A DNA stretch of 60,920 nt from Macrostomum lignano (lineage: Eukaryota): the NCBI GenBank assembly GCA_002269645.1, contig NIVC01000499.1:1-60920 (forward strand). The letters run 5' to 3'. The position numbers and the translations under genes are program-made. Under the pieces are notes generated by a model that saw nothing but the letters and a program-made list of their open reading frames with translations, did no database searches and was not told the DNA's origin. Shown here in pieces: positions 18,388 through 57,109 of the stretch (position 1 is the stretch's first letter; each line of letters begins with the position of its first letter).

Positions 18388-19092
18388 TCAGTCAAAATAG
18401 CACAGACGCGGAGTCATCAAGAGCATCGGCAGGTCTTCTTCCCCGCCGCCCATGAATCGGGCAACGCGGACGGCCGCCAGGTGGAGAGCGTACGGCCGGT
18501 TCGGCCGCTCCAGGTCGGGGCCGGCCAGGCCGACCGCCTCCGCGAATAACCGGCTCCTCTCCTCGGCCGTGGTTTGACGGAGCTCCGCCCAGATCGGGCC
18601 ACCGAGGTCAACGATTTCTCCGCCTTGCCGAGCCGCTCTGACGAGTACAGCGCTTATCAGGTTGGCGCCGGCAGCGATGACGGTAGCTCGGTATTCCGGT
18701 ATTGGCGACTCCGTTTGAGTGCCGGTATCGAGCGTTTCCGCCGGACGTTCGGGCGATGGTGGCGGGGCCCTGGGCAGGGTGCGGCGCAGCGACGCGGCCA
18801 GGTCGGTCCAAACAGCTGAGGAGCATGCGGCCGCTCCCTGAGTGTCATCGGTCCAAGACATCGGAGACGGGGCCGCGTCGGGATGCCTGGCGTCGTCGAG
18901 ATCCCCTCCGCGTTCATCTGTTCCGCCGGGCCTGCCGTGGTGCTCCGACCCGACTCGCTCACGGGCCGCCGGCCGAGCCCCGTCGATGTCTGGAAGGGAA
19001 TTGCGGACTTGGAGGCGGATGTCCGCCAAGCCCCGCATCACCTGCTGTTCCAGCTGCACGTAAGCCAAAGCGGCCGCGATCCGGTCGACCAT
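18388..19092 (-). CDS. Extra 3' ORF of unknown function (234 aa from ATG; frame open from 19296)
   Basis: Sense-strand ORF between integrase and PPT. It has helical amphipathic N- and C-terminal segments and no signal peptide or transmembrane segment, so it is not env-like. Confidence 0.55.
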   Translation of the reverse strand: MVDRIAAALAYVQLEQQVMRGLADIRLQVRNSLPDIDGARPAARERVGSEHHGRPGGTDERGGDLDDARHPDAAPSPMSWTDDTQGAAACSSAVWTDLAASLRRTLPRAPPPSPERPAETLDTGTQTESPIPEYRATVIAAGANLISAVLVRAARQGGEIVDLGGPIWAELRQTTAEERSRLFAEAVGLAGPDLERPNRPYALHLAAVRVARFMGGGEEDLPMLLMTPRLCYFD

Positions 19093-21101: not shown

Positions 21102-24100
21102 CTGGGCATCAAGAGCTCAGGCAGGACAACCTTCGGGGACTGCTGGCCATCAGTCAGATCGATCATCAGCAGGCCGTTGTCCTCTCGCAGATTATCATAA
21201 TATCCGAGCAGATTCCGCTGCTCCTTCGTCAGTCGCAACCGGGCGTCGAACTCAGGCTTCAGGGCTTTGTTCTCGACCAAGTTGAGCACGTAGCTGATTG
21301 CTCGGTCGGCGCGCTGCGCGTCGACAAACTGTTGCCGCGTCATCGGCATCCTCATAAAATCAGTGAGCACGGCGCGGCATGGCTGAGGGTTCCGGATTTC
21401 CTCAGTCTCCGCTTCTGTGGCTCGCAGTTGATCACGCGACTCCGTCTTGTCGGCGTCAGGATTAGGTCGCTCCGAGGGACTTTGTCTCACAACGTCGGCG
21501 TACGATCGCTGATCTCGTTTCGAAGTTCTCATCGTCGCTCTCTTGACAGGAATTTCCGCAGCTGGAGCAGTGCACTTGCCTCCACTGCACAGCCCAGGCG
21601 ACTCTTGGCTGTAGGGCGAGACGCAACACGTGAAGCACGCCTCGTCGCAGGCAGCCGTAGCCGTCGGCTCGATCATCGTCGTCATTGGGTGAGTCTTCTC
21701 CAGCACTGGGCGGTGTCGCAAAGGGGGACTCGACTTTCCGCACAGGCGATGAGCAGCTGTCTGTCGGCTCGGGGGACAGAGCGTTGACCTTGCAGCCGTC
21801 GCGAGAGTCTGGCCTCTGTCAACACGGCGAGAACTCTCAGCGCAAAACTCCGGGGAGTTGAACTTACATTGCTGGTCTGGATTCGCGTTGTGGGCTGTCA
21901 TCAGAAGGGCTGCTTGTTCAGTGGCCTCTGAGTCGTGGTCCATGGGCGTCTCCAGATTCCGAGACCCGCAGTCTTGGACATCATCAAGGAGGTCTACGTC
22001 AGCAGTGGCCTCCGAGGGTTTGTCCGGGCGAATCTCCAAGTAACGGCAGTCGGCGTGGGCGTCGCTGCGGAGGGCTGAGGTGTCAGTGGCCTCCGGGTTG
22101 GTGTCCAAACCGGTCTCCAGGCGTTGACTGCAGCGATGGTCGTCGTGCTGAAGGACTGCTGGCGCAGTGGCCTCCAGGTCTTCGGCCAGGGCAGTTTCGG
22201 CCTCCTTGTTGCGAGTGTGGACCTTCTTCGTGCGGGCTGCTCTCGCAGTGGCCTCACGTGTGGTGTCCAATTCCGGCTCCAGGCTGGTGTCATCACCGGG
22301 TCGGGCTGCAGAACCGGGGTGCTCCAGCAGTCGGCCATGTTCGAAGTCAACCGGTGGTGTCTCCGGGCGTCTTGACAGGGCGTCAGCGTTGGCGTGGTCC
22401 TTGCCTTTGCGATGGTGAAGCTGGAAGCGGAACTCGCTTAATCGCTCAATCCAACGGCCCAAGATGCCTGTGACCTGCGTCTGGTTCAGCAGCCACAGCA
22501 AGGCCCGATGGTCAGAACGAACTTCAAACTTCTTGCCGATTAAATAATGACGGAAATGTCGCATCGCGTCCACGATTGCAAGCAGCTCTTTCTTCGTGAC
22601 CGTGTAGCGCTTCTCAGGATCACGAAGCTTCCGGCTAAAGAATGCAATTGGGCGCTCGACGCCGTCGGATTGCCGTTGTCCAAGACAAGCGCCTATGCGA
22701 ATGTCTGAGGCATCCGTGTCTAGGACAAACTTCACATTAGGATCTGAGTTAAACTCAGGCAGAGCGAGAACTTCAGTCGAACACAACTTCTTCTTCAACG
22801 TGTCGAACGCTACCTGGTGCTCATCAGTCCAATGCTGCCGCAGGCTGCCGATGTCCTTTCGAGTCAGGGCATGTAGCGGCGCAGCAAATCCAGCGTAGCC
22901 GTTGACAAACTTGTGGTAGTAATTGGCGAGGCCTAGGAATTGTCTCAGTTGAGTAACGGACTGTGGCACGGGCCAATCACGGATCTGCGCAATCTTGTCC
23001 TCACAGGTCTTCAGGCCGTCGGGAGTCACGACGTGGCCTAGATAATGCAGCTCCTTGAGGAACAAATGGCACTTCTTCGGCTTGACCTTGAGGTTGGCTG
23101 CGATAATCCGCTGGAGTACAGTCCGCAGGTTGTCCAGCTGCTCCTCGAAGGTCACAGAGTGCACCACGATGTCATCCATGTAGCCAAGCGCAGTCTTTGG
23201 CGTCAGGCCGTCCAGGAGCTTATTGATGCAACGCTGAAAGCTGCCTGGACTATCGTGGAGACCCATCGGTAGAACATTGAAACAGAATTGTCCGCGGTCA
23301 ATCACAGAGAACGCCGTCAGGTGCTGATCGCAGTCGCGCAGCGGGATCTGCCAGAATCCTTGAGCGAGATCCAAGCTAGAGTACCACTGGGCACCACGCA
23401 GCTTCGCGAAGGTCTCCTGAATGTGCGGCAGCGGGTACGGGTGGTACACACACTTGTCGTTGAGAGCTCTGAAGTCATGCACCAGCCTGATGTTGCCGTC
23501 CTTCTTGGGCACTATCAGCATTGGCGAGTTGTAGCTAGAATAAGCCGGGCGAATGATGTGCTTCGCCAGCATCTCGTCTAGCAGGGCGTCTAGCTTGTCC
23601 TTCAGATGAGGCGGGATCCTGCGCGGTGGTAGCGCAACTGGTGTCCGATCCTTCAGGATGATCTCGTGGGTCACCAGGTGTGTCAGGCCAGCGTCTAGCA
23701 GATGCTTCGAGAAGGCTGCTTGACACTCAACTAGTAGATCTCGCACTCTCTGTCGTTGATCTTCGGACAGCTCGCTGTTGATCTCGACTTCCTCTAGCCA
23801 AGCTGTGCTGGACTCTTCAGGGCTCCTTGGCAAATGTCGCACTTCAGGTTCCGGCGTCTCTTCCAGGTACATCAGGTCGGCAGTTCTAAGTGGTGTCGCA
23901 ACACCAACGCGGATGCCCGACTGCAGGAACACCTCGCAGTCAGCAGTGTTGACGACCTCGATGTAGCCTCGACCTTCAGGCATCGTCATCAGAGCTGGAG
24001 CTGCTTCCAGAGTGTTGCAGCTGGGGTGCAGTCTCGACTTCACCAGCTCGACGATTGATGGCGATCCTCGGTTCTCGGGGTGGCCGACATCCAACTGGAC

Positions 24101-24781
24101 GGCCAACAGCGCTGAACTTCTCGGCGGCAGAGTGCACTTCTCGGAGGTGTACACCCGGCATGATTGAAGCTCACGGCGCGAATAGCGAACGGGAATGCAC
24201 GCGCCATTGTTGAACTTTAACATTCCTTGAGCAAAGTCCAAGTTCTGGCAGTGTTCACGCATGAAATTAATACCAAGCAAATTTTCACAATCGGTGACCG
24301 TGACCAGGAATTCGGTGTCCGCGACGACATCACCGAACTCCACCGGGATGATCACCTTACACGCAAGGGGTAGCTGCGTACCGTCGTACATGGTCACGCA
24401 ATCCGGGATAGCATGCGATATGATACAACGAGGCATCCGACGTCTAACATTGGCCCAGGTCGACGCTCCAAGAAAGTTTTTCCGACTGCCGCTGTCTAGT
24501 AGGAAAGGGACTTCTCGGCCCGCCAATCGGCCGGTGACGTACGGATCAGCCTCACGCGCATGGATTTTTTGATCATCGGAGGTGTCCACGAAACCTCCGC
24601 ACTCAGCCTCACTTACTGATGAGCGACTGTCGGACTGGGCATTGGCGTCTGCGCAGCCGACATCCTCTTCTTCTGGTGAGCGTTCGGAGTCTGCCAAGTA
24701 GCCGGGGCTTGGGCTCTGCGGAGGGCGTTGCCGTGGGCGCTCTCCGTCTCGCCGTTTCCCTGGTTCTGGCGTAACGGGCAC
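21041..24781 (-). CDS. pol: Pol part 1: aspartic protease, reverse transcriptase, RNase H, long tether insert
   Basis: FLLDSGS (protease); LPMGLHDSPGSFQR and YMDD (RT); DASD, KKELLA, SDH, NADALSR (RNase H). The frame shifts at ~21105 into the integrase ORF. Confidence 0.95.
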   Translation of the reverse strand: MPVTPEPGKRRDGERPRQRPPQSPSPGYLADSERSPEEEDVGCADANAQSDSRSSVSEAECGGFVDTSDDQKIHAREADPYVTGRLAGREVPFLLDSGSRKNFLGASTWANVRRRMPRCIISHAIPDCVTMYDGTQLPLACKVIIPVEFGDVVADTEFLVTVTDCENLLGINFMREHCQNLDFAQGMLKFNNGACIPVRYSRRELQSCRVYTSEKCTLPPRSSALLAVQLDVGHPENRGSPSIVELVKSRLHPSCNTLEAAPALMTMPEGRGYIEVVNTADCEVFLQSGIRVGVATPLRTADLMYLEETPEPEVRHLPRSPEESSTAWLEEVEINSELSEDQRQRVRDLLVECQAAFSKHLLDAGLTHLVTHEIILKDRTPVALPPRRIPPHLKDKLDALLDEMLAKHIIRPAYSSYNSPMLIVPKKDGNIRLVHDFRALNDKCVYHPYPLPHIQETFAKLRGAQWYSSLDLAQGFWQIPLRDCDQHLTAFSVIDRGQFCFNVLPMGLHDSPGSFQRCINKLLDGLTPKTALGYMDDIVVHSVTFEEQLDNLRTVLQRIIAANLKVKPKKCHLFLKELHYLGHVVTPDGLKTCEDKIAQIRDWPVPQSVTQLRQFLGLANYYHKFVNGYAGFAAPLHALTRKDIGSLRQHWTDEHQVAFDTLKKKLCSTEVLALPEFNSDPNVKFVLDTDASDIRIGACLGQRQSDGVERPIAFFSRKLRDPEKRYTVTKKELLAIVDAMRHFRHYLIGKKFEVRSDHRALLWLLNQTQVTGILGRWIERLSEFRFQLHHRKGKDHANADALSRRPETPPVDFEHGRLLEHPGSAARPGDDTSLEPELDTTREATARAARTKKVHTRNKEAETALAEDLEATAPAVLQHDDHRCSQRLETGLDTNPEATDTSALRSDAHADCRYLEIRPDKPSEATADVDLLDDVQDCGSRNLETPMDHDSEATEQAALLMTAHNANPDQQCKFNSPEFCAESSRRVDRGQTLATAARSTLCPPSRQTAAHRLCGKSSPPLRHRPVLEKTHPMTTMIEPTATAACDEACFTCCVSPYSQESPGLCSGGKCTAPAAEIPVKRATMRTSKRDQRSYADVVRQSPSERPNPDADKTESRDQLRATEAETEEIRNPQPCRAVLTDFMRMPMTRQQFVDAQRADRAISYVLNLVENKALKPEFDARLRLTKEQRNLLGYYDNLREDNGLLMIDLTDGQQSPKVVLPELLMPRCSRSSTVRHCVDTSARRRR

Positions 24782-25782
24782 TGTGCATTGCGATGACCAG
24801 GCTGACCGCAGCCATAGCAGATCATGGCTTTCGAAGGCGGACTCGTCTTCTGCTGCTGGTCACGCTGCACCAGGTTGTCTAGCAGTCGCTGCTGTTTCTC
24901 TAGCAGATCAGTCAGAGCCAGGAGAGCTTGAGCGGTGGCGTCGGGCGTCGGGTCACCGTCGCGCTCCCCGTTCAGCATGCGAACCGGGGGTTGAGCAGAG
25001 CGCTGCGCCAGTTCCTTGGCGCCTTCCAGACGATGGAGTTCTCGAATAGCGGCCAGCAGATTGTTCGGGCGGACCCAATAGAGCCGCTCGCGCAGATCTG
25101 GTGTCGTCCTGATGCCAGCTAGGAACTGATCAGCCAGCTCCCGCTCTCGATCCTCAGGGTGCATTCGAGGGTACGCTCGCTCTCCCAAGGTGCGCAGGGC
25201 ATCAGCGTACTCTTCTGCTGACTCATTCTTGCCTTGCTGACGGCGCCTCAGCAGCTCTCGATATTCATCCGCGCCACCGTGGCGGGCGAATCTCTCGATC
25301 AGTCGCTGCCTGACCTCCTCGTAGCCAGCATAGCGTGGGAGGTGCATACTGAGCAGAGCCGGGTAAGCAGTAGCCAGATCTAGACTCGCAACGAGGTGCT
25401 GCTTCATCTCGATCGGGTCTTCGATACGCTCCATCTCGCAGCGTTGCTCGAACGCGGCGAGCCAGACATGGATGTCCTGGCTGGGCGTGTACTTTACAAT
25501 CTTAACAGATTTGCTTACCGGCCGCTCCATCTGCTGCTGCAGAGCTGCCATCATCGTTCTCACATCCTGGGGCCTGATGTTCTGGCCGAGGTCGTCCAAA
25601 CCTGGCAGAAGCTCGTCTGGCGGGTCTTCGGACACTTCGCTTCTCGCACTTCGCCGCGGCATCTGCTGACCAAGGTCGTTGACCGCTGCTGCTGCGGCAG
25701 CCGATGCTGCTGCAGGTCTCGAACTGCTGATGTGCTGATCCAGCCGGCTGCTGCACCGGCTCTCTTCTCTCTCGTTAAACAT
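24613..25782 (-). CDS. gag: Gag (389 aa) with a single CCHC zinc knuckle
   Basis: Position after the PBS; CYGCGQPGHRNAQC knuckle; retrotransposon capsid-like region. Confidence 0.92.
   Translation of the reverse strand: MFNEREESRCSSRLDQHISSSRPAAASAAAAAAVNDLGQQMPRRSARSEVSEDPPDELLPGLDDLGQNIRPQDVRTMMAALQQQMERPVSKSVKIVKYTPSQDIHVWLAAFEQRCEMERIEDPIEMKQHLVASLDLATAYPALLSMHLPRYAGYEEVRQRLIERFARHGGADEYRELLRRRQQGKNESAEEYADALRTLGERAYPRMHPEDRERELADQFLAGIRTTPDLRERLYWVRPNNLLAAIRELHRLEGAKELAQRSAQPPVRMLNGERDGDPTPDATAQALLALTDLLEKQQRLLDNLVQRDQQQKTSPPSKAMICYGCGQPGHRNAQCPLRQNQGNGETESAHGNALRRAQAPATWQTPNAHQKKRMSAAQTPMPSPTVAHQ
24754..24760 (-). promoter_or_regulatory. -1 ribosomal frameshift slippery heptamer G GGA AAC
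   Basis: In gag frame CAG GGA AAC; a -1 slip gives GKRRDGERP, the start of the pol ORF. A stem CGGAG-A-GCG...CGC-C-CTCCG begins ~7 nt downstream. Confidence 0.8.
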
Positions 25783-25891
25783 TTCAAATTAGTAGAATAG
25801 CCGAATTCTTACTCGAAAGAGCGGTTGTCTTGGGTGTAGTAGTAGTCGAATCTTGACTTGTCGGATCCCAGATAGTCGTGTCGTTGACTCG

Positions 25892-25915
25892 TCGAATCCC
25901 ACCGCTGAGTCACCA
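25892..25915 (-). promoter_or_regulatory. Primer binding site, tRNA-Leu-like with an internal bulge
   Basis: Minus strand TGGTGACTCAGCGGTGGGATTCGA starts 1 nt after the LTR. The plus strand TCGAATCCCACCGCTG-AGT-CACCA resembles the animal tRNA-Leu 3' end TCGAATCCCACCGCTG-C-CACCA. Confidence 0.7.
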
Positions 25916-25916
25916 G

Positions 25917-27049
25917 TGAAGTACAGGTGTCTTGCCTGTGGTTGTCTAGAGGCCTTCAATAGGAACGCTGCCCCGGTGAAGTACAGTTGCTTGAGCTCCT
26001 CTGGGAAGTCTCCGGGTTGATCTAGTAGCGTTGGTAGTGCTGCCACCAGCTTCGCAGAGTCGCAGCCTTCGGTGAGGTGCTGAGCTCGTAGAAGCAAATA
26101 ACTAAGACGAGAGAAAGAGACTCGCACTTCGTGCAGATTTAGCAGTTCTCGCGCAGAGGTGCCCACCGTCAGCAGTCCCTGCCGGGCTGGTGCGGGGTGA
26201 GAGCGAAAGTGCTAGCTTCGGGCGATCTGAGCTGGCCTGCTAGCTGATAGCAGGAACAATCAGAGCCAGAGGCAGTCACGCGCAAAGTCGGGAGTCTTGG
26301 AGTTCAACTTAAGCGTCAACTTGGCACACAACTTAGAGTTCGCTAGAAACGAAACGGAAGGAACGCTAGGAAAGCTTGGAAAGCTAGGAACGCGAGGAAC
26401 GGTAGGAACGCTGAAAACGCAGAAACGAGAGGCTGAAACGGAAGGGCCGGTTAACGGAAGGAAAGAAAGGCTTGTCTGAGCCAAGCCAGGAGAGGGGCTG
26501 CATTTATAGGGAGGATCGATTGCACCATAGCACGAAAGGCCCCCGCTGAGAGTCATAAGTGACTCTGTTGCTATTTTTAGCAACAAACAAGCGGGCCCTG
26601 CCTCAGAGGAGGCAAGGGGGGGTCCGGGCGCACGTGATCTCCCCATAAACACGAGCCCAGCGTACAATGATGAAATCATTGCACTTTGGACTAAAGAAGG
26701 AAGAGGGCCTTGTCATGTGACTGACTCACATGACAAGGGGAAAAGGCCCACAAGTGAAGGCACTCGTGACCGTGGGACCGGAAAACAGGAAGGCACTCCA
26801 AATTTGGAGATGCCTGACAGAGAACGAAACAGAGGCAGGCCAGACCAAGCTGTCTGGGCACTGCAAAAAGGGAAAGCGAGACAAAAGGGGCAAACGAGGA
26901 CAAACAGACAGACAGACAAACGGGCAGAGGACAGGCCAGGGACAGGCGGGAGGGACAGGCAACTGCCCAGCGGCAGACAGAAACCTGGGGAGAAGGCGAG
27001 GGCAACAGCTGACTAGTGCGGCGCCTAACTAAACTAGCGACTCACTACA
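25917..27049 (-). repeat. 5' LTR (candidate TATA box TATAAAT on minus strand near 26505-26511)
   Basis: Direct repeat of the 3' LTR, immediately followed on the minus strand by the PBS. Confidence 0.95.
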
Positions 27050-27289: not shown

Positions 27290-27630
27290 ACAGACAGCAT
27301 CAGGCTGCAGCATCAGGCTGTAACAGACAGCATCAGGCTGTAACAGACAGCATCAGGCTGTAACAGACAGCATCAGGCTATAACAGACAGCATCAGGCTG
27401 TAACAGACAGCATCAGGCTGTAACAGACAGCATCAGGCTGCAGCATCAGGCTGTAACAGACAGCATCAGGCTGTAACAGACAGCATCAGGCTGTAACAGA
27501 CAGCATCAGGCTGTAACAGACAGCATCAGGCTATAACAGACAGCATCAGGCTGTAACAGACAGCATCAGGCTGTAACAGACAGCATCAGGCTGTAACAGA
27601 CAGCATCAGGCTGTAACAGACAGCATCAGG
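27290..27630. repeat. 20-bp minisatellite (ACAGACAGCATCAGGCTGTA), about 16 copies
   Basis: Direct inspection. Confidence 0.92.
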
Positions 27631-27639
27631 CTTGTTTCT

Positions 27640-28025
27640 CTTGTTTCAGAGACAGGGAGATGGAGGGCGAGACAGGGAGATGGAGGGAGAGACAGCGACA
27701 TGGAGGGAGAGACAGTGAGATGGAGGGAGAGACAATGAGATGGAGGGAGAGACAGTGAGATGGAGGGAGAGACAGTGAGATGGAGTTAGAGACAGTGAGA
27801 TGGAGGAAGAAACAGACAGATTGAGGGAGAAACAGAGAGATGTAGGGAGAGACAGGAAGATGGGGGGGAAATAGTGAGATGTAGGGAGAGACAGTGAGAT
27901 GGAGGGAGACAGGGAGATGGAGGGGGAGATAGTGAGATGGAAGAAGAGACAGTGAGATGGAAGAAGAGACATGGAGATGGAAGGAGAGGCAGGAAGATGG
28001 AGATAGAGAAGAGAGATGCAGGGAG
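27640..28025. repeat. 20-bp purine-rich minisatellite (GAGACAGTGAGATGGAGGGA)
   Basis: Period 20 is visible at 27721-27780; the array decays toward 28025. Confidence 0.88.
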
Positions 28026-28619
28026 AAGAGGTGTGATGAAGGCACAGACATTCTAATGAAGTGAGTTGGATCCGAGGAAGGAATATGACATATGCCTTCT
28101 CCATCATACATATAGGCATATATGCCTGTAGGCATTGTCTCTCTGTCGATGCATTAACTCTGAAAGAACCAGGCCGGTAGTGTTGGCTCCACCATCCGGT
28201 TGAAAATGCTGGTATTTGCCGAGCTCTGGAGGTTTGTTTAGCTACTGAGCCAACCAGCTGGCAGTTGCGAATGTCACTTTCACAGCAGCTACAGCTGATT
28301 GTGAATTGGCTTTTGAAGTCAGTGCGAGTGTGAGTCATTAGCCCTGGCTTAATTTTCTACTCGGTCTCTCAATATAGGATTCCGCAAGGAGCCTTGCCCT
28401 TGGACTTTTGTATTGTTTGTTTCACACTGCTCATGAGTGCCGGTAATTGAGAGAGGATTGAAGCGTTTAATTTCTATTGAAATCTTTGAGTTAGCTTGTG
28501 TATAACTTATTGCTAATGCATGAGATCGTGATTCACTGGCAACACAGCACTGTCACTTTATCCGGTCTTGACAACTTATATACTCGTATTTCTTGACCTT
28601 CTATCTTCTCAATTTCTGC

Positions 28620-29158
28620 ATGGGCGCCACCTTTGTAGCAGTTTCGGCGCCATCTTTGTAGCAGCTTCGGCACCACCTTTGTAGCAGCTTCGGCACCACC
28701 TTTGTAGCAGCTTCGGCACCATCTTTGTAGCAGCTTCGGCACCACCTTTGTAGCAGCTTCGGCACCACCTTTGTAGCAGCTTCGGCACCATCTTTGTAGC
28801 AGCTTCGGCACCACCTTTGTAGCAGCTTCGGCACCATCTTTGTAGCAGCTTCGGCACCACCTTTGTAGCAGCTTCGGCACCATCTTTGTAGCAGCTTCGG
28901 CACCACCTTTGTAGCAGCTTCGGCACCACCTTTGTAGCAGCTTCGGCACCATCTTTGTAGCAGCTTCGGCACCACCTTTGTAGCAGCTTCGGCACCATCT
29001 TTGTAGCAGCTTCGGCACCACCTTTGTAGCAGCTTCGGCACCACCTTTGTAGCAGCTTCGGCACCATCTTTGTAGCAGCTTCGGCACCACCTTTGTAGCA
29101 GCTTCGGCACCACCTTTGTAGCAGCTTCGGCGCCACCTTTTGTAGCAGCTTCGGCGCC
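28620..29158. repeat. 23-bp minisatellite (CTTTGTAGCAGCTTCGGCACCA[C/T]), about 23 copies
   Basis: The 23-aa periodic translation in all three minus frames equals 3 x 23 bp. Confidence 0.93.
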
Positions 29159-31502: not shown

Positions 31503-33186
31503 TCAAACTACATCGCTTCGGTGGGTCGGCTCGATCCATCTGAAGCTAAATGCGTAGCTGGTCCGACGCGCCATCGGGTCCTTCGGTACTCGGTGAATGT
31601 ACAAGTCTTCGATGGCACCCTCGGTGACGACAAGATCGCCGTGAGCTGAACGTAGTCGCACATAGCGATCTTCTCGACCTTTGCGTGAGAACTCAAGGTA
31701 ACGAGCTTGACCTAGAGACACAGCGGCAATGTAGGGATGCTCACCTAGCGGCTTCTCTTTCTCACAGTGCCAGCCAAGACTGTCGCGTCCATTGCGATAC
31801 ATATAGCACATGCACGCATTGAACTGACGACCAACTGCTTTCTCAACTATTTCTTTGAGATCCTGTAGTTTTGGGTTCCAATCATTGCAGTTTTTTAACG
31901 AATTTCCATAATACTCAAAGTCTGGCCCAACATAACAGGTCAGTCTCGGCTCCTGCCTCTCCTTACCATCTTTAGTAGTATAAGTAAGCTGTTTCCAGGC
32001 CAAATCCTGCTTCAGAGACTCCATAAAATTTTGGCCAACAGTTCGATTCAAAAATGACGGCATAAACGAGATGCAAGCATGAACGCCGTCCTTGGTCCGA
32101 TCGAGTTGATAAGAGCCAGGTAAGTTAATCTCAACTGGTCCATGCGCCATGTACATCAATTGGAGTAAGTTAATCTGAGGCAAACCGGCGGTACTAGACT
32201 TGCATCTCGCAGCAGATTTTTCAGCATCCTTCCGTAAACAGTCAAGCTCATTAGAATCAACTTGACAGGCTGCTTCCTGCGCTTCTGCCGCTCTGGCAAT
32301 CAGAGCGGTTGATACGGCTTCCGACACGGCTTGGGATAGACTCGAATTCAGCGCCACAGTCAGCGCGTCTGATAAAGCAGTGAACGAAATCTTGGGAACA
32401 GAGGAAGCGCCTTCGGAATTCGCCGCACCATTGTCAGCATGTTCGGACTCAGTCTCAGCCTTAGGAGAACATTCTATCAGTCCTTCGGCTTCGGAAACAT
32501 CAACTGGCTGCAGCACTTCCGATTCTCTGCGATGGTGACAGCACATGAAACAGGCCACGAGAGCTGTCTTGGCGCTACCGACACCGCCCGACTCAAGCCT
32601 CTGCTGCCAGCTATTATCAAAGCAATAGCCGCCGTCCATCAGACAGAGATCGCCCGATTGCAGCGTAATTTCACTTTTACTTTTGCTATTAGAACGACGA
32701 AGCCGCAGTTTACGTTCTCCATCGCCAAGAAACAGCATAGCAACGGTAGTACCGGGCAAAGGTCTATCATTTGAAACGGTGCAATCAGACCAAGCAAACC
32801 AATCCACAGCGTGCTGCTGGCGCAAGCACCATAGTATCGCCGAATTGAACAGTCTGCCAGTAACTTGCTCGATCAGCAATTTCAACAGCGTCGCCTCCTC
32901 CGGATGCCAGGCCGCAACAGTTGCAGTCAGATGAAGCGTCAAGAAAGCCGCCTGAACAGCTGCCAGACGCTTGGAACTGCTGGCCGAGCGACGCTGTTCG
33001 GCTGGAAGTCCTGCCGGCGGAGGCTGCGGCCACTCGGCGTTGCTTAGGATGCGCTCTCGAGACAGTCGGACTCGCTCTGGACCAAGGAAGCGGCGCACAA
33101 GCGTCAAACGAATTGGCAAATTGTGAGATTGCAAAGAAACTTGATCGGGCAGATTGTAGGCACCGGACTTTTCGATCTTGTAAATT
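31503..33186 (-). CDS. Exon 2 of C2H2-ZnF / tandem ALKBH3-like gene: two AlkB (2OG-Fe(II)) folds
   Basis: Acceptor TTTTTTCACCACAG at 33187. Domain 1: IEKSGAYNL...LIEQVTGRLFNSAIL...WFAWSD...AMLFLGDGERKL...LQSGDLCLM...WQQ. Domain 2: INLPGSYQL...QEPRLTCYVG...FNACMCYMYRNGRDSLGWHCEKE...IAAVSLG...HGDLVVTEG...IHRVPK...FSFR. Confidence 0.85.
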
Positions 33187-33369
33187 CTGTGGTGAAAAAA
33201 AATACAAGACTAACGGCTTAGTTAAAAGAAAAGGACAGAAGAGAAAAAATCTCACTAACTATTCAATTAAAATGTAAAGCTTAATTTATTGTCATAGTTT
33301 GGCAACAATAACAAACAATATCTAGTGAGCTAGTGTAATTATATAATTCATAAAACATTAGCCACTTAC

Positions 33370-33444
33370 GAACTCTCCTGTTCAGGCAGCTCAATCGAAC
33401 ATGCCAGCAGCTCAGAGAAAGTGCACCTCAACCTTGGCGCCAGC
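33370..33444 (-). CDS. 3' remnant of exon 1 of the ZnF-AlkB gene
   Basis: Reads (L)APRLRCTFSELLACSIELPEQES then a GTAAGT donor at 33369. The phase-2 donor matches the exon-2 acceptor; the intron is 183 bp. Confidence 0.75.
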
Positions 33445-35285
33445 TTCTTCTTCTTCTTCTTCGGGCGTGCTCGGGCCAGGGCCCATGGCACCGGGCGTCA
33501 GATGGCGCCCGCCTTCCCGAGGAAGTTCAACACCGCGACGCAGTTCTCGAAAACTGCCGCGGGCTCCGGGCTTGGCCCCCAGAGGCGGCAGCGGTGTGAT
33601 GTCAGGGCGGGGCAGGAGATCAGCAGATGGGCCGCCGTCTCCTCTCCATCGCCACAGAAGCGGCAGGTGGGGCCACGTCAACGCCGATGGCGGCCTGGAA
33701 GCCCCGCAGGGCCGGGCAGCGGTCGGCGCGCAGCTGGCAGATCAGCCGCTCCTGCCGCCGCGTGAGGTCGCTTGTCGGCTGAGGCGGCAGGCGGCCCGCC
33801 GTGCAGGCAAGGTGCCAGGCAAGCGAGCTCGTGCTCGCCGCCTCGGTGGCCGCCGCGTTGTAGATCTGGTGCCAGCGGGCGAGGCAGTAGCGGCGGACGG
33901 CAGCCTGCGCGGCAGCTAGCGGTACGGGCGCGGTGCCTTGCGCCAGCGTGGTGCCTTGCTTGGCGATCTCGTCCACGGCCTCGTTGCCTGGGATTCCCGC
34001 GTGGCCAGGCACCCACTGCAGGTGGACCGAGGTTCCCCGGGCCGCGAGGTCGGCGAGGCTGCCCCAGACGGCGTCGATCATGGTGGCGCCCGTCGACCCG
34101 GGGCCGGACGCGAGCGCGCTAAGCGCGCTCAGGGAGTCGGAGCAGATGCGGACCGGCGACAGCTCTGCCGGGTCCGGGGCCGCGAGCACCCACCGAAGGG
34201 CCTCAGCGATGGCCACTAACTCGGCGTGGAAGCTGGACGTCACATGGCCAGCAGCGACGCACAGCGTCGTGTTGGGCTCGACCAGGACGCCACTGCCGCC
34301 GTCCAGGATGCCGTCCTTCGCCGCTCCGTCGGTCCAGATCACGGTGCTGGCGGGCGGCAGGGCGGCAAGTGTCTGCTGCGCCGCGGCTCTCCGGGCCTCC
34401 GGCAGGTCCCCCGCGAGGTTGGGGAGGCCAACTGCAGCCCGAGGGTGACAGAGTCCAGAACAGCCCAGGGAGGTGTCGTCGGGATAGCGTGGACGGGCTC
34501 TCGCGGGAAGCCGCTCAGGCCCGCAGCGCTGCATACACTGGCCGCCGTCTCGCGCCAGCCGCGGGCGCTTTGGAGGCGGCGGCGCGGGCCGACGCTGGCC
34601 GCGCAGGCGCGCAGCGGGTTGTCATGCGGCAGCCGGAGGGCGCGCTCGTGGAGGAGGCCAGCGTGCATCTCCGCGCGGACTGCCATCGGCGGCAATCCAG
34701 CCTCGCGCTCCAGCACCTCCGACCTGGTGTTCCGTGGACACCCGGTGATGATGCGCGCGCCCAGGCGCTGGGCCCGGTCCAGGTGGTCGATAGCTGTCCT
34801 GCAGGCCGTCGGCATCCAGGCGCCGGCAGCGTACTCCAGCACCGGCCGCACATAGGCCGTGTAGAGCTGGCGCACGTCGCTCTGCTTGGCGCCCCAGTTG
34901 CTGCCAGACAGCGCCGCCAGAACACCGCAGCGGGCGCGGGCGCGGCCGGCGACGTTGGCGGCGTGCGCCGTGAAGCTGAGCAGCCGGTCCAGGATGACGC
35001 CGAGGAAGCGCGGCTGGCGGTCCGTCGAGAGCGGGGCGTCGTTCAGCCGCAGACGCAGCTCACGGCTGGCCTCTCCGGCGGTGGTGGTGAACAGGGAAGC
35101 GGCGCACTTGTTCGGCGCCAGCTCCATCCGCCACTCGTTCGCCCAGTCGGAGACCGCGTCGATCGCAGCCTGCGCCTTCGTCTCGGCCTCTTCCACGGTC
35201 AGGCCTTGCACTGCGATGGCCAGGTCGTCGGCGTAGAGGAACGGCGTGCAGTCGGACGGCAGTTGGCTGTCTGTCGCTGTCGCAA
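33445..35285 (-). mobile_element. 5'-truncated non-LTR retrotransposon (I-group type: RT end, RNase H, CCHC), (GAA)n tail
   Basis: YADD at the 5' junction; WTDG...FHAELVAI...CSDSLSAL...WVPGHAGIPGNEAVD (RNase H); CRFCGDGEETAAHLLISC; (GAA)6 tail; GCT shared at both junctions; very GC-rich relative to its flanks. Confidence 0.9.
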
Positions 35286-35632
35286 AGCATAGCATTCACA
35301 ATGCTGCTTGGACAGCTTGGTAGGTCATTGTGACCACTACCAATAAGCTGGGGATTAGTTAATATTTCGTGAACAATGCCATAGTCCACATTGCCAGCAT
35401 GCCAGAGCTTAGAATGCTGTTCTAACAAAGAAAGCGAATTTGTACTCATGCTGCAGGCTTTGCATTCTAAGATTTGGAGTAAAACACATTTATTAAAATG
35501 AGTTTGCTTGACATGTTCTTCTAGCCAATCAAATCGCAGGCCAAGGTAATTACATTCTGGACATTGGTAAGCAATTGTATTGAGATGGTCACTGCATTTT
35601 AAATTTATTGCCAATATCTCTTTTGCATCCAT
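35286..35632 (-). CDS. 5' part of exon 1 of the ZnF-AlkB gene: two C2H2 zinc fingers
   Basis: ATG at 35632 with an in-frame stop upstream. Fingers: CPECNYLGLRFDWLEEHVKQTH and CKACSMSTNSLSLLEQHSKLWH. Confidence 0.8.
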
Positions 35633-35769
35633 TAGATGAGATCATGAAATCAAACAAAATAATGGCTTAGATTGGTCAAAGCATTTTGAAAAAGTACAAA
35701 TATTTGTTATAAAAAATAAAGCTTTAAATAAAAAATGTTTTTATAACTGATTTAATATATTTGTTGTTG

Positions 35770-38280: not shown

Positions 38281-39190
38281 ATTAATCGAATATCTTTTAC
38301 TACTTTTAGTTAGTTTAAGTAAAAAATCTCAAAAAATTGAAGCTTGCAAAAGTAGAGAAAATTATTAGTTTATAAAATTATGTAAATGATAACAAAGTAG
38401 ATGCTTAGCTTACTAGCTACTGCTTACTGCTCAATGTAAATAACAAGAATTTTTTGTTGCGAGCTGGCCCGGCCAGCTGGACTGATCGAAAATCAAAAAT
38501 ACCAATTTTCGTGCCCTTTTTTCAAATGTGTACAAAGATTCGAAGATGTTCGTTGATATATTAAAATATAACAAAGTAGATTATCTCTTGTACAAGTTAT
38601 GAATGAAAATCTAGATTTAAAGTCATTTATTTCTTTAACAACTAAATATACAGTATAATTTAGTTCGATTGTTTGTAACTTGCTCTCATGTTTGCATCAT
38701 TTTTTCAAGGACGACTTAAGTAGAAGGACGGGAAACCTCGTTTCTTAGAAAATTTTTGAAGGCACTTTTTCCCGAAAAAATACACTGCGGAGATACCTCT
38801 ATACTCCCAGTACCAGAACCAGTACCAGAACCAGTACCAAAAAATAAAATACAAAATACAAGTAAAAAACGAAAAATAACCTAGAAAAATGTCTAAAATA
38901 GTAAAAAATCAACTCTAGCAATTATTACAAGTGTTACCATGCAACGTTCAACATATTTCGTTTCAGCAAATTACATTACAGCATAACTTAATGCCTATTA
39001 AAATGCCTATTTAAAAACTAAAAGTAAAACACGGAAATTGAACATTCTAGCTAAAAAAACCTTAAAACAAATATATATATAACTAAAAAACCTATCAACA
39101 ATTGTTGGTGATGCCATAGATACAATATAAATATACCAAAAAACTGTACATGTAATATGTTCAATTCTTGTAAATTTTTACACAAAAATT

Positions 39191-42100
39191 ACTTTAGTGT
39201 ACTTCGGCAGGAACCATTGTGAGTACGAAGCTGAAAACTGAGATCTGGAAGGAAACATTATCAATCTAGAAGCCTACAAGACGCCAAGGCTCCATCTGTT
39301 CCCTACTCGAACTTACAGACTCCCAAGTCCCCCCTGCTCAGTACATTAATATGCAGAAAGTACTTTAGTGTACTTCGGCAGGACCATTGTGAGTACGAAG
39401 CTGAAAACTGAGATCTGGAAGTAAACATTATCAATCTAGAAGCCTACAAGACGCCAAGGCTCCATCTGTTCCCTACTCGAACTTACAGACTCCCAAGTCC
39501 CCCCTGCTCAGTACACTCAGCTGCATAAAGTACTTTAGTGTACTTCGGCAGGAACCATTGTGAGTACGAAGCTGAAAACTGAGATCTGGAAGTAAACATT
39601 ATCAATCTAGAAGCCTACAAGACGCCAAGGCTCCATCTGTTCCCTACTCGAACTTACAGACTCCCAAGTCCCCCCTGCTCAGTACATTAATATGCATAAA
39701 GTACTTTAGTGTACTTCGGCAGGAACCATTGTGAGTACGAAGCTGAAAACTGAGATCTGGAAGGAAACATTATCAATCTAGAAGCCTACAAGACGCCAAG
39801 GCTCCATCTGTTCCCTACTCGAACTTACAGACTCCCAAGTCCCCCCTGCTCAGTACATTAATATGCAGAAAGTACTTTAGTGTACTTCGGCAGGACCATT
39901 GTGAGTACGAAGCTGAAAACTGAGATCTGGAAGGAAACATTATCAATCTAGAAGCCTACAAGACGCCAAGGCTCCATCTGTTCCCTACTCGAACTTACAG
40001 ACTCCCAAGTCCCCCCTGCTCAGTACATTAATATGCAGAAAGTACTTTAGTGTACTTCGGCAGGACCATTGTGAGTACGAAGCTGAAAACTGAGATCTGG
40101 AAGAAACATTATCAATCTAGAAGCCTACAAGACGCCAAGGCTCCATCTGTTCCCTACTCGAACTTACAGACTCCCAAGTCCCCCCTGCTCAGTACATTAA
40201 TATGCAGAAAGTACTTTAGTGTACTTCGGCAGGAACCATTGTGAGTACGAAGCTGAAAACTGAGATCTGGAAGGAAACATTATCAATCTAGAAGCCTACA
40301 AGACGCCAAGGCTCCATCTGTTCCCTACTCGAACTTACAGACTCCCAAGTCCCCCCTGCTCAGTACACTCAGCTGCAGAAAGTACTTTAGTGTACTTCGG
40401 CAGGAACCATTGTGAGTACGAAGCTGAAAACTGAGATCTGGAAGGAAACATTATCAATCTAAAGCCTACAAGACGCCAAGGCTCCATCTGTTCCCTACTC
40501 GAACTTACAGACTCCCAAGTCCCCCCTGCTCAGTACATTAATATGCAGAAAGTACTTTAGTGTACTTCGCAGGAACCATTGTGAGTACGAAGCTGAAAAC
40601 TGAGATCTGGAAGAAACATTATCAATCTAGAAGCCTACAAGACGCCAAGGCTCCATCTGTTCCCTACTCGAACTTACAGACTCCCAAGTCCCCCCTGCTC
40701 AGTACACTCAGCTGCAGAAAGTACTTTAGTGTACTTCGGCAGGAACCATTGTGAGTACGAAGCTGAAAACTGAGATCTGGAAGGAAACATTATCAATCTA
40801 GAAGCCTACAAGACGCCAAGGCTCCATCTGTTCCCTACTCGAACTTACAGACTCCCAAGTCCCCCCTGCTCAGTACATTAATATGCAGAAAGTACTTTAG
40901 TGTACTTCGGCAGGAACCATTGTGAGTACGAAGCTGAAAACTGAGATCTGGAAGGAAACATTATCAATCTAGAAGCCTACAAGACGCCAAGGCTCCATCT
41001 GTTCCCTACTCGAACTTACAGACTCCCAAGTCCCCCCTGCTCAGTACATTAATATGCAGAAAGTACTTTAGTGTACTTCGGCAGGAACCATTGTGAGTAC
41101 GAAGCTGAAAACTGAGATCTGGAAGGAAACATTATCAATCTAGAAGCCTACAAGACGCCAAGGCTCCATCTGTTCCCTACTCGAACTTACAGACTCCCAA
41201 GTCCCCCCTGCTCAGTACACTCAGCTGCAGAAAGTACTTTAGTGTACTTCGGCAGGAACCATTGTGAGTACGAAGCTGAAAACTGAGATCTGGAAGGAAA
41301 CATTATCAATCTAGAAGCCTACAAGACGCCAAGGCTCCATCTGTTCCCTACTCGAACTTACAGACTCCCAAGTCCCCCCTGCTCAGTACACTCAGCTGCA
41401 TAAAGTACTTTAGTGTACTTCGGCAGGAACCATTGTGAGTACGAAGCTGAAAACTGAGATCTGGAAGGAAACATTATCAATCTAGAAGCCTACAAGACGC
41501 CAAGGCTCCATCTGTTCCCTACTCGAACTTACAGACTCCCAAGTCCCCCCTGCTCAGTACATTAATATGCAGAAAGTACTTTAGTGTACTTCGGCAGGAC
41601 CATTGTGAGTACGAAGCTGAAAACTGAGATCTGGAAGGAAACATTATCAATCTAGAAGCCTACAAGACGCCAAGGCTCCATCTGTTCCCTACTCGAACTT
41701 ACAGACTCCCAAGTCCCCCCTGCTCAGTACATTAATATGCAGAAAGTACTTTAGTGTACTTCGGCAGGAACCATTGTGAGTACGAAGCTGAAAACTGAGA
41801 TCTGGAAGGAAACATTATCAATCTAGAAGCCTACAAGACGCCAAGGCTCCATCTGTTCCCTACTCGAACTTACAGACTCCCAAGTCCCCCTGCTCAGTAC
41901 ACTCAGCTGCAGAAAGTACTTTAGTGTACTTCGGCAGGAACCATTGTGAGTACGAAGCTGAAAACTGAGATCTGGAAGGAAACATTATCAATCTAGAAGC
42001 CTACAAGACGCCAAGGCTCCATCTGTTCCCTACTCGAACTTACAGACTCCCAAGTCCCCCCTGCTCAGTACATTAATATGCAGAAAGTACTTTAGTGTAC

Positions 42101-45100
42101 TTCGGCAGGACCATTGTGAGTACGAAGCTGAAAACTGAGATCTGGAAGGAAACATTATCAATCTAGAAGCCTACAAGACGCCAAGGCTCCATCTGTTCCC
42201 TACTCGAACTTACAGACTCCCAAGTCCCCCTGCTCAGTACATTAATATGCAGAAAGTACTTTAGTGTACTTCGGCAGGAACCATTGTGAGTACGAAGCTG
42301 AAAACTGAGATCTGGAAGGAAACATTATCAATCTAGAAGCCTACAAGACGCCAAGGCTCCATCTGTTCCCTACTCGAACTTACAGACTCCCAAGTCCCCC
42401 CTGCTCAGTACACTCAGCTGCAGAAAGTACTTTAGTGTACTTCGGCAGGAACCATTGTGAGTACGAAGCTGAAAACTGAGATCTGGAAGGAAACATTATC
42501 AATCTAGAAGCCTACAAGACGCCAAGGCTCCATCTGTTCCCTACTCGAACTTACAGACTCCCAAGTCCCCCCTGCTCAGTACATTAATATGCAGAAAGTA
42601 CTTTAGTGTACTTCGGCAGGAACCATTGTGAGTACGAAGCTGAAAACTGAGATCTGGAAGGAAACATTATCAATCTAGAAGCCTACAAGACGCCAAGGCT
42701 CCATCTGTTCCCTACTCGAACTTACAGACTCCCAAGTCCCCCCTGCTCAGTACATTAATATGCAGAAAGTACTTTAGTGTACTTCGGCAGGACCATTGTG
42801 AGTACGAAGCTGAAAACTGAGATCTGGAAGGAAACATTATCAATCTAGAAGCCTACAAGACGCCAAGGCTCCATCTGTTCCCTACTCGAACTTACAGACT
42901 CCCAAGTCCCCCTGCTCAGTACATTAATATGCAGAAAGTACTTTAGTGTACTTCGGCAGGAACCATTGTGAGTACGAAGCTGAAAACTGAGATCTGGAAG
43001 GAAACATTATCAATCTAGAAGCCTACAAGACGCCAAGGCTCCATCTGTTCCCTACTCGAACTTACAGACTCCCAAGTCCCCCCTGCTCAGTACATTAATA
43101 TGCAGAAAGTACTTTAGTGTACTTCGGCAGGAACCATTGTGAGTACGAAGCTGAAAACTGAGATCTGGAAGGAAACATTATCAATCTAGAAGCCTACAAG
43201 ACGCCAAGGCTCCATCTGTTCCCTACTCGAACTTACAGACTCCCAAGTCCCCCCTGCTCAGTACATTAATATGCAGAAAGTACTTTAGTGTACTTCGGCA
43301 GGAACCATTGTGAGTACGAAGCTGAAAACTGAGATCTGGAAGGAAACATTATCAATCTAGAAGCCTACAAGACGCCAAGGCTCCATCTGTTCCCTACTCG
43401 AACTTACAGACTCCCAAGTCCCCCCTGCTCAGTACACTGCAGAAAGTACTTTAGTGTACTTCGGCAGGAACCATTGTGAGTACGAAGCTGAAAACTGAGA
43501 TCTGGAAGGAAACATTATCAATCTAGAAGCCTACAAGACGCCAAGGCTCCATCTGTTCCCTACTCGAACTTACAGACTCCCAAGTCCCCCCTGCTCAGTA
43601 CATTAATATGCAGAAAGTACTTTAGTGTACTTCGGCAGGACCATTGTGAGTACGAAGCTGAAAACTGAGATCTGGAAGGAAACATTATCAATCTAGAAGC
43701 CTACAAGACGCCAAGGCTCCATCTGTTCCCTACTCGAACTTACAGACTCCCAAGTCCCCCTGCTCAGTACATTAATATGCAGAAAGTACTTTAGTGTACT
43801 TCGGCAGGAACCATTGTGAGTACGAAGCTGAAAACTGAGATCTGGAAGGAAACATTATCAATCTAAAGCCTACAAGACGCCAAGGCTCCATCTGTTCCCT
43901 ACTCGAACTTACAGACTCCCAAGTCCCCCCTGCTCAGTACATTAATATGCAGAAAGTACTTTAGTGTACTTCGGCAGGAACCATTGTGAGTACGAAGCTG
44001 AAAACTGAGATCTGGAAGTAAACATTATCAATCTAGAAGCCTACAAGACGCCAAGGCTCCATCTGTTCCCTACTCGAACTTACAGACTCCCAAGTCCCCC
44101 CTGCTCAGTACATTAATATGCAGAAAGTACTTTAGTGTACTTCGGCAGGACCATTGTGAGTACGAAGCTGAAAACTGAGATCTGGAAGTAAACATTATCA
44201 ATCTAGAAGCCTACAAGACGCCAAGGCTCCATCTGTTCCCTACTCGAACTTACAGACTCCCAAGTCCCCCCTGCTCAGTACATTAATATGCAGAAAGTAC
44301 TTTAGTGTACTTCGGCAGGAACCATTGTGAGTACGAAGCTGAAAACTGAGATCTGGAAGGAAACATTATCAATCTAGAAGCCTACAAGACGCCAAGGCTC
44401 CATCTGTTCCCTACTCGAACTTACAGACTCCCAAGTCCCCCCTGCTCAGTACATTAATATGCAGAAAGTACTTTAGTGTACTTCGCAGGACCATTGTGAG
44501 TACGAAGCTGAAAACTGAGATCTGGAAGGAAACATTATCAATCTAGAAGCCTACAAGACGCCAAGGCTCCATCTGTTCCCTACTCGAACTTACAGACTCC
44601 CAAGTCCCCCCTGCTCAGTACATTAATATGCAGAAAGTACTTTAGTGTACTTCGGCAGGACCCATTGTGAGTACGAAGCTGAAAACTGAGATCTGGAAGG
44701 AAACATTATCGATCTAGAAGCCTACAAGACGCCAAGGCTCCATCTGTTCCCTACTCGAACTTACAGACTCCCAAGTCCCCCCTGCTCTGTACATTAATAT
44801 GCAGAAAGTACTTTAGTGTACTTCGGAAGGAACCATTGTGAGTACGAAGCTGAAAACTGAGATCTGGAAGGAAACATTATCAATCTAGAAGCCTACAAGA
44901 CGCCAAGGCTCCATCTGTTCCCTACTCGAACTTACAGACTCCCAAGTCCCCCCTGCTCAGTACATTAATATGCAGAAAGTACTTTAGTGTACTTCGGCAG
45001 GACCATTGTGAGTACGAAGCTGAAAACTGAGATCTGGAAGGAAACATTATCAATCTAGAAGCCTACAAGACGCCAAGGCTCCATCTGTTCCCTACTCGAA

Positions 45101-45140
45101 CTTACAGACTCCCAAGTCCCCCTGCTCAGTACATTAATAT
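39191..45140 (+). repeat. 171-bp tandem satellite, about 35 units (left arm)
   Basis: Unit spacing 170-171 bp (e.g. 39531, 39702, 39873). Two main variants: GTACATTAATATGCA and GTACACTCAGCTGCA. Confidence 0.97.
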
Positions 45141-45233
45141 TCTAGCCCATTCCGCTAGTCCCTGAACGGCCGACGCGTCGCTATGGACGGAGGGTTGGCG
45201 CCGCCCAGGGAGGTCCCCCAGTGTCGCCAGCAG

Positions 45234-48913: not shown

Positions 48914-48952
48914 ACTGTATTAAATGCAATTTCTGGCTAGAGCCCAGGGCCA

Positions 48953-57030: not shown

Positions 57031-57109
57031 AATTTTAGTTAGTGACCATTTTGAGTCGTTCTGAGACTGTAATTCTACCATGACTAGAGAACATTCATTG
57101 ATTGTGCCA

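Follow-up and report, generated by a model that had tools for sequence, protein, structure and literature searches.

We analysed a 60,920-nucleotide (nt) stretch of the genome of the flatworm Macrostomum lignano (the whole of contig NIVC01000499.1, positions 1 to 60,920; hereafter, the window), in which Mlig021122, an annotated but uncharacterised gene, occupies the minus strand from 35632 to 31503. From its N-terminus, the encoded protein carries two C2H2 zinc fingers (ZnFs), a middle AlkB-like domain with replaced catalytic residues, a linker and a C-terminal ALKBH3-like domain (C-domain). We favour, with moderate confidence, the explanation that Mlig021122 is a ZnF-ZnF plus ALKBH3-type family member into which a dead AlkB-like unit and the linker have been inserted, that its C-domain is a candidate dealkylase, and that the copy in the window, g3, has been broken by a long interspersed nuclear element (LINE). 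An uninterrupted ZnF-AlkB copy, g2, is present on a second contig, NIVC01000497.1, at positions 10001-12310 of locus L001. This copy of 2310 nt consists of a coding sequence (CDS) of 2127 nt and one 183-nt intron, and the coding sequences of g2 and g3 differ at 3 of the 2127 nt, with g3-specific bases in codons 147 (AGT), 550 (TAT) and 626 (AAG).

The gene model was rebuilt from three minus-strand pieces. The initial annotation had joined 35632-35286, 33441-33370 and 33186-31503 (347 + 72 + 1684 = 2103 nt), and recomputation gave the same single open frame of 700 codons with one terminal stop. However, the uninterrupted g2 copy encodes 705 amino acids (aa) from the ATG corresponding to 35632, and comparison with g2 revealed that five residues (CDSEL) were absent from the 700-aa product. 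The corrected model comprises 35632-35274, 33444-33370 and 33186-31503 on the minus strand, and its 705-aa translation is identical to GenBank PAA82062.1 apart from three extra 5' residues of the latter. The initiation codon is the ATG at 35632-35630, and an in-frame TGA precedes it by 9 nt. The part of coding exon 1 upstream of the LINE (35274-35632), with its 3' limit (35274) set by comparison with the uninterrupted L001 copy, contains codons 1-119 and two bases of codon 120, and its translation matches PAA82062.1 exactly. Beyond the LINE, exon 1 continues at 33370-33444 with the third base of codon 120 and ends two bases into codon 145, and coding exon 2 (31503-33186) contains codons 145-705 and the TGA stop at 31503-31505. 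The 183-nt intron at 33187-33369, which splits codon 145, was correctly predicted as a GT-AG intron. It has the ends GTAAGT...CACAG, shows 0 differences from the g2 intron, is present in the transcript-derived GenBank CDS and lies at the exact start of the middle AlkB-like unit.

A protein search using the reconstruction revealed one cluster, containing the representative PAA82062.1 ('hypothetical protein BOX15_Mlig021122g3, partial [Macrostomum lignano]', 708 aa), PAA82071.1 (g2, contig NIVC01000497.1) and A0A1I8J7G8, a 263-aa N-terminal fragment that UniProt calls 'C2H2-type domain-containing protein'. Contrary to the original claim, the gene is not hidden, because GenBank annotates both g3 here and g2 on the other contig and UniProt holds the N-terminal fragment. 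The open reading frame (ORF) list does show disconnected pieces, as had been noticed, namely 35060-35632 (190 aa) and 31503-33134 (543 aa). The former extends into GC-rich foreign sequence. The GenBank CDS is flagged as 5'-partial and begins three codons (SHL) upstream of the ATG, with an in-frame TGA immediately before them (35642-35644), so that the flag is apparently an artefact of annotation. Transcript evidence underlies the GenBank models, which were built from de novo transcripts mapped with BLAT together with StringTie/TACO, and the annotation pipeline took near-best BLAT matches at >=80% identity (PMC5730564). Therefore, RNA joining the ZnF and AlkB exons exists for the Mlig021122 gene cluster.

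The C-domain (aa 492-701; 31518-32147, minus strand) matched the AlkB-type family PF13532 with 63.8 bits, above the cut-off of 31.2. It also aligned with human ALKBH3 structures over the whole catalytic domain (E 1e-28; aa 487-696 of the 700-aa model). These matches assign it, at the sequence level, to the ALKBH3 subfamily of the AlkB / 2-oxoglutarate (2OG)-Fe(II) oxygenases. The Fe(II) triad His618-x-Glu620...His676 is retained, as are the EPR Arg, the FN motif, Tyr608, the distal Arg694 and the base-pocket aromatic residues. Relative to the AlkB domain of the paralogue Mlig024840, the C-domain is 88-89% identical in protein and 77% identical in DNA sequence, with proportions of nonsynonymous and synonymous differences (pN and pS) of 0.09 and 0.85 (saturated), respectively. 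This comparison indicates that the C-domain is under strong purifying selection. The DNA identity and the pS value further imply that the duplication separating Mlig021122 from Mlig024840 is old, and that the derived active site of the C-domain (H-x-E, Ser, Tyr) has been kept by selection. Recent gene conversion of the C-domain from Mlig024840 was also considered and was rejected, owing to the 77% nucleotide identity and the saturated synonymous sites. The pS of 0.85 (window 31518-32147 against positions 9786-10532 of the Mlig024840 locus) is above the random expectation of 0.75. The GC content at third codon positions is 0.50 in Mlig021122 and 0.77 in Mlig024840, which is a marked difference in codon composition for two old paralogues of the same genome.

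The middle domain (aa 146-361; 32538-33185, minus strand) was matched by a profile of 150 ALKBH3-like domains in hmmsearch, with 36.9 bits (E 1.4e-13, Z=1). Of the 200 profile positions, 12-179 were covered (matched core, aa 167-342). The maximum score in 2000 shuffles was 5.0 bits. A comparison of the domain with the ALKBH3 type by hhalign gave a probability of 97.2% (E 3.5e-11), 155 of 158 family proteins matched it at E<10 (best, 33 bits), and a search of PDB sequences using the domain alone placed ALKBH3 chains on top, at E 0.03. In a MAFFT alignment, the unit was alignable from aa 146, the first residue past the intron, and included an 'NLP' motif common to the N-terminal extension of the C-domain. 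BLASTP of the middle domain against the C-domain of the same protein gave E 2e-4 over 96 aa only, and a PDB search using the whole protein missed the middle domain. Its metal ligands are replaced (His1 by Phe275, or by Ser in the BLAST alignment; Asp by Trp; His2 by Gln340), and so are the substrate-binding EPR Arg (by Ser) and the 2OG Tyr (by Leu). The profile evidence shows that the middle domain is genuinely homologous to ALKBH3-type domains, and the replacements indicate a catalytically dead AlkB-like domain that has lost all metal and substrate ligands. Of the two tandem ALKBH3-like domains proposed in the initial annotation, the first is thus supported as a homologue by the profile and hhalign matches, but functionally it does not qualify as ALKBH3-like, since its catalytic residues are replaced and PF13532 did not match it at E<=1 in a Pfam search. 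The domain order proposed there (ZnF-ZnF, AlkB-like, linker, ALKBH3-like) agrees with the finger, profile and PF13532 matches.

The middle domain and linker together span 334 codons without a stop (P about 6e-7 from base composition), although identity of the domain has fallen to 15-27%, and this is an argument for maintenance of the reading frame. The C-terminal half of another M. lignano protein, Mlig033276, resembles the middle domain with 26% identity over 202 aa (Smith-Waterman z 6.1; 0 of 1000 shuffles reached the score). The corresponding z against the C-domain of Mlig021122 itself is 6.5, and the two values are too close to separate these sources as the origin of the middle domain. A word-index protein search using the 236-aa middle domain found no match at E<=10, not even its own database entry, and hence carries no weight as absence. 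The same type of search using the full protein returned only its own cluster, which we took as low sensitivity and not as absence. No relatives of the middle domain were found in a scan of JGI metagenomes. AlphaFold 2 (AF2) gave a mean predicted local distance difference test (pLDDT) score of 33 for the full-length protein with a 3-sequence multiple sequence alignment (MSA), a set-up in which the bona fide ALKBH3 domain was likewise unfolded. For the middle domain with a 4-sequence MSA, pLDDT was 39 and the predicted template modelling score (pTM) was 0.42. A Foldseek search of the PDB using the latter, low-confidence model found nothing at E<=1e-3, the weak top hits being ALKBH2 and other 2OG oxygenases with a template modelling (TM) score of about 0.2. 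As the genuine ALKBH3 domain did not fold either, these models carry no weight in either direction on a jelly roll.

The linker (aa 362-476; 32193-32537, minus strand) is rich in Ala, Ser and Glu and matched no family in Pfam or the PDB. DSSP analysis of the AF2 model, in which pLDDT is below 50 here, placed helices at aa 413-450 and 456-471 (residues 416-453 and 459-474 of the sequence P0001).

The two C2H2 zinc fingers, both on the minus strand, lie at 35498-35563 (finger 1, aa 24-45, CPECNYLGLRFDWLEEHVKQTH) and 35399-35464 (finger 2, aa 57-78, CKACSMSTNSLSLLEQHSKLWH), each with the pattern C-x2-C-x12-H-x4-H. The general ligand spacing C-x2-4-C-x12-H-x3-5-H is thus present twice. Mlig021122, Mlig024840, Mlig015948 and the locus L003, at ~30% overall identity, share all eight ligands unchanged and in register. 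Finger 1 has weak matches to the Pfam families zf_C2H2_ZHX and zf-H2C2_5. The best Pfam match of finger 2 is zf-C2H2_7th_ZNF462 (E 9.5e-5), with 22.5 bits against a gathering score of 27, and the general model zf-C2H2 (PF00096) gave 13.9 bits against a gathering score of 25.2. In the PDB, the fingers matched those of BCL11A at E 1e-4.

A full scan of 1.84 billion representative proteins revealed 4044 AlkB-type matches. In all of the best 150 of these, the best-matching region lay within aa 468-708. Neither the matches listed nor the JGI metagenomes included an orthologue with the middle region. Of 159 proteins retrieved, only those of the M. lignano groups and two ENA sequences, P0005 and P0006, had a C2H2 pattern N-terminal to an AlkB domain. 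ZnF-ALKBH3 proteins thus form a small, apparently flatworm-restricted family of three M. lignano gene groups and the two ENA sequences, within which, judging from the sequences compared, the inserted dead domain and linker (~350 aa) are found only in Mlig021122. C2H2 fingers had initially been taken to be foreign to ALKBH2/3 proteins. This does not hold in this lineage, since the ZnF-AlkB arrangement occurs in Mlig024840/Mlig002470, in Mlig015948/Mlig016819/Mlig021096 and in both ENA sequences. A literature search covering Mlig021122, Macrostomum AlkB, flatworm ALKBH3 and the AlkB-C2H2 architecture found no description of this architecture, and the sole related publication was a review noting the retention of ALKB2 in M. 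lignano. The statement that the architecture belongs to no described family therefore agrees with the literature, but the gene is annotated and is part of a lineage-specific ZnF-ALKBH3 family.

The members of this family differ from Mlig021122 in instructive ways. Mlig024840/Mlig002470 encode ZnF-ZnF-AlkB proteins of ~353 aa and are intronless and tandemly duplicated. They share with Mlig021122 the homologous fingers and spacer, the same derived active-site residues and the closely similar AlkB domain described above, but lack the middle AlkB-like domain, the linker and the intron, and their finger region is only ~31% identical. The two tandem copies of the 353-aa Mlig024840 gene lie at 6016-7065 and 9483-10532 of locus L002 (NIVC01000625.1), with a synonymous divergence (dS) of 0.046. 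The GenBank g2 model of Mlig024840 (PAA79604.1, 292 aa, 'partial') appears to be chimeric over both copies, with a frameshifted end. Mlig024840.g4 has been listed as 'Neoblast, stringent' and as trans-spliced (PMC5816591 supplement), and proliferating stem cells therefore express at least one member of the family. As in Mlig021122, an ALKBH3-type domain is preceded by C2H2 fingers, one to three in number, in the proteins Mlig015948/016819/021096, P0005 and P0006. However, their active site is canonical (HSDDE or HSDNE; R-I/V-N-x-T-F-R), and they have a Q-rich spacer or a third finger and no second AlkB-like unit. The layout of Mlig015948/016819/021096 is ZnF-ZnF, Q-rich linker and canonical AlkB domain. 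P0006, on a 1.6-kb contig, has one finger and a canonical AlkB domain, and P0005, rebuilt on L003, has three fingers, a canonical AlkB domain and two introns.

Outside this family, Mlig033276 (P0157/P0014) has a canonical ALKBH3-like domain followed by the ~200-aa C-terminal half (aa about 335-522) that resembles the middle domain of Mlig021122 and, like it, is devoid of the HxD and His motifs. Its order is reversed relative to Mlig021122 (live, then dead), and it has no zinc fingers. Although its C-terminal half scored only 2.7 bits against the AlkB profile, which is not significant on its own, its resemblance to the middle domain suggests that Mlig033276 may be a second pairing of live and dead AlkB domains in the same genome. 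Human ALKBH3 (PDB IDs 2iuw, 8jnr and 9ncz) is a single-domain dealkylase of 1-methyladenine (1mA) and 3-methylcytosine (3mC) in single-stranded DNA and RNA. The C-domain shares with it EPRLT, the FN..L..Y.R strand, WH, the second His in HRVPK and the terminal FR. In contrast, Mlig021122 has ~490 extra N-terminal residues, comprising the two C2H2 fingers, the dead AlkB-like domain and the linker, and four substituted active-site positions that are considered below. ALKBH8 is a multi-domain AlkB-family protein consisting of an RNA recognition motif, an AlkB domain and a methyltransferase. It resembles Mlig021122 in principle, as an AlkB-type oxygenase targeted by an appended nucleic-acid-binding module, but its appended domains and AlkB subfamily are different and it is not known to have a tandem AlkB unit.

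The g3 copy in the window is interrupted inside codon 120 by a 5'-truncated non-long terminal repeat (non-LTR) retrotransposon fragment of 1829 nt (33445-35273), which is inserted on the minus strand in the sense orientation of the gene and is absent from the paralogous locus L001. Only the C-terminal part of its reverse transcriptase (RT) remains (PF00078, 31.6 bits, YADD motif; profile positions 146-205, i.e., the last 60), together with a complete RNase H (PF00075, 53.4 bits) in a different frame. A (GAA)6 tail at the LINE 3' end directly abuts the exon, and the GC content of the element is 59-73%, compared with about 43-51% in the surrounding gene. RT and RNase H remnants, 5' truncation, a 3' simple-repeat tail and an empty site in L001 all identify the fragment as a LINE. 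No further copy of this LINE was found in the window, L001 or L002. The empty site in L001 reads ...TGCGACAGCGA|GCTGGCGCC..., with the native junction GACAGCGA|GCTGGCG in g2, which places the element at 33445-35273 and not at 33445-35285 as originally proposed. One GCT copy had been interpreted as a target-site duplication. However, the native sequence is neither duplicated nor deleted, with an ambiguity of at most 1 nt, and we therefore rejected both the duplication and the 35285 boundary, the GCT being a coincidence.

Uninterrupted read-through of g3 yields 190 aa, comprising the two fingers and, before the stop, 70 residues of LINE origin, so that any product of such reading would be a ZnF-only protein with a LINE-derived tail. 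The GenBank g3 CDS crosses the LINE at GA|CAGACA...GAAGAA|GCT, which is neither a GT-AG nor another standard splice pair. Taken at face value, this CDS joins the exons over the LINE and implies that the element is removed from the g3 pre-mRNA as a new intron and that g3 is still functional. In-frame cryptic GT...AG pairs do exist, e.g., the donor at 35299 (ATT|GTGAAT) with acceptors within the (GAA)n tail, giving 696-701 aa, and the near-identity of the g3 and g2 coding sequences would also suit a functional gene. We nevertheless consider a functional g3 quite unlikely. The annotated junction is non-standard and is what BLAT mapping of a g2-derived transcript onto a 99.9%-identical copy would be expected to produce (PMC5730564), the cryptic acceptors lie in purine-rich sequence and lack a polypyrimidine tract, and a very recent insertion explains the near-identical CDS equally well. 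The likeliest reading of the GenBank g3 CDS is that a g2-type transcript was mapped onto g3, which is probably a null copy, i.e., a recently inactivated duplicate or haplotype. The annotated CDS thus conceals a LINE insertion behind a non-canonical 'intron', and caution is needed when counting functional copies in this partly duplicated genome.

In the mechanism that we propose for the intact protein, ~350 aa comprising a complete dead AlkB-like unit and the Ala/Ser/Glu-rich linker would have entered as an insertion that separates the fingers from the catalytic domain. Recruitment to nucleic acid or to a protein partner would be the task of the two fingers, which are atypical and widely spaced. 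The C-domain would be the sole candidate catalytic module, carrying out ALKBH3-like oxidative dealkylation of, e.g., 1mA or 3mC in single-stranded DNA or RNA, and the dead domain would be its partner in binding or scaffolding, without catalysis of its own. With Ser in place of the first 2OG-anchoring Arg and Glu in place of the Asp, the reaction may be altered or weak.

Several observations weigh against this proposal. Relative to human ALKBH3, Asp193 is replaced by Glu620, Asn179 by Tyr606, Arg269 by Ser688 and Asn271 by Ala690. The first of these positions is Asp in 97% of 150 homologues, and the four positions are 89-97% conserved among them. As is known from AlkB and ALKBH structures, 2OG is bound by the patterns Asn-x-Tyr on one strand and Arg-x-Asn-x-Thr-x-Arg on the last strand, of which the C-domain keeps Tyr608 and Arg694. 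The first Arg of the RxNxTxR strand is required for 2OG binding in AlkB-family enzymes (AlkB R204, FTO R316), and its replacement by Ser therefore makes canonical 2OG binding doubtful. With such a derived active site (H-x-E and Ser at the Arg269 position), demethylase activity is not assured. Furthermore, PF13532 is silent on the middle domain, the predicted jelly-roll fold of which derives from profile evidence, the models being of low confidence (pLDDT 33 and 39). Pfam C2H2-type models match both fingers, none of them above its gathering score, and no expression record specific to Mlig021122 was found in the literature or in supplementary tables.

The active-site substitutions are also the basis of the main rival explanation, that the whole protein is non-catalytic, with both AlkB-like domains being pseudoenzymes, and, tethered by its zinc fingers, reads or binds nucleic acid, possibly with methylated bases as its target. 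Retention of the derived set in Mlig024840 under strong purifying selection suggests a stable state and not decay, which suits this rival, as does the need for the first Arg. On the other hand, both His residues and the carboxylate are kept, and the ALKBH3 motif H-x-D/E...H (His191, Asp193, His257) allows either Asp or Glu (PMC10816986). Arg694, Tyr608, the EPR Arg and the base-pocket aromatic residues are also kept, and two Arg residues 2-3 positions before Ser688 might replace the lost one. We therefore regard a wholly non-catalytic protein as possible but doubtful. Decay of the entire gene is a less attractive explanation. Mlig021122 would then be a functionless chimeric duplicate, with the LINE in g3 as one further step, in line with the loss of every catalytic residue of the middle domain, the failure to find an orthologue with the middle region in the scans described above, and the disruption of one of the two known copies. 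However, g2 has 705 open codons, the middle region has stayed free of stops despite its deep divergence, pN of the C-domain is low against a saturated pS relative to the old paralogue, and transcript-based annotation exists (PMC5730564), all of which render decay improbable. Finally, M. lignano has polycistronic, trans-spliced transcription units through which adjacent genes can become merged in assemblies (PMC5730564), and the ZnF and AlkB exons might thus be separate genes and their fusion an artefact of the gene model. This is very improbable indeed, since the intron ends are canonical and the frame is kept, ZnF-ZnF-AlkB is encoded by a single uninterrupted exon in both Mlig024840 copies on L002, and ZnF and AlkB lie within one ORF or transcript in P0006, P0009 and L003.

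The insertion of a dead unit into a finger-bearing ALKBH3-type protein with a candidate dealkylase domain thus remains our preferred explanation. A more elaborate version, which we offer only tentatively and think unlikely, is that the protein is a zinc-finger-tethered pair of live and dead AlkB units. The dead unit, related to the C-terminal half of Mlig033276, would hold nucleic acid or regulate the live ALKBH3-type unit, the rebuilt co-substrate site of the live unit (H-x-E, Ser for Arg) would confer a non-canonical co-substrate or substrate, and the family would serve in flatworm stem cells to erase or read base methylation in a targeted way.

The surroundings of the gene were compared between the two loci. 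L001 is collinear with the window at 98.4-99.4% identity except for three blocks found only in the window: the LINE at 33445-35273, 16854-27049 and 38796-54056. A neighbouring gene on the plus strand (55831-57030) encodes a CECR6/TMEM121-family protein (PF14997, 73.6 bits) and is also found beside g2, at L001 3870-5018. With this neighbour at both loci, the g2 and g3 loci are therefore syntenic duplicates. In the 10-kb block at 16854-27049 there is a minus-strand LTR retrotransposon of the Ty3/Gypsy type, whose ORFs for RT, RNase H and integrase lie at 19038-25782. The 15-kb block at 38796-54056 contains 35 copies of a 171-bp satellite with 98% matches (39186-45140) and 6.8 copies of the inverted 171-bp unit (52512-53673). 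These arrays flank another LINE with endonuclease, RT and RNase H ORFs (45234-50515), the RNase H of which is only 30% identical to that of the LINE inside Mlig021122. Minisatellites with 15-23-bp units are present at 6703-6895, 7788-8486, 27308-29155, 57103-57611 and 59264-60918 of the window, and most of them are common to L001 with differing copy numbers.

The architecture of Mlig021122 is genuine and is without a description in the searchable literature; the gene itself was already annotated, one of its AlkB domains is dead and its window copy is the broken one. AlkB-family oxygenases are usually targeted by partner proteins or by appended RNA-binding domains. An AlkB family with built-in C2H2 fingers would be a natural experiment on the targeting of these repair or demethylation enzymes and on the origin of pseudoenzyme domains, particularly as one family member combines an internal dead copy of the catalytic domain with a remodelled 2OG site under strong purifying selection. 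Furthermore, the neoblast-enriched listing of a close paralogue connects the family with the biology of stem cells, and the animal is a regeneration model amenable to transgenesis.

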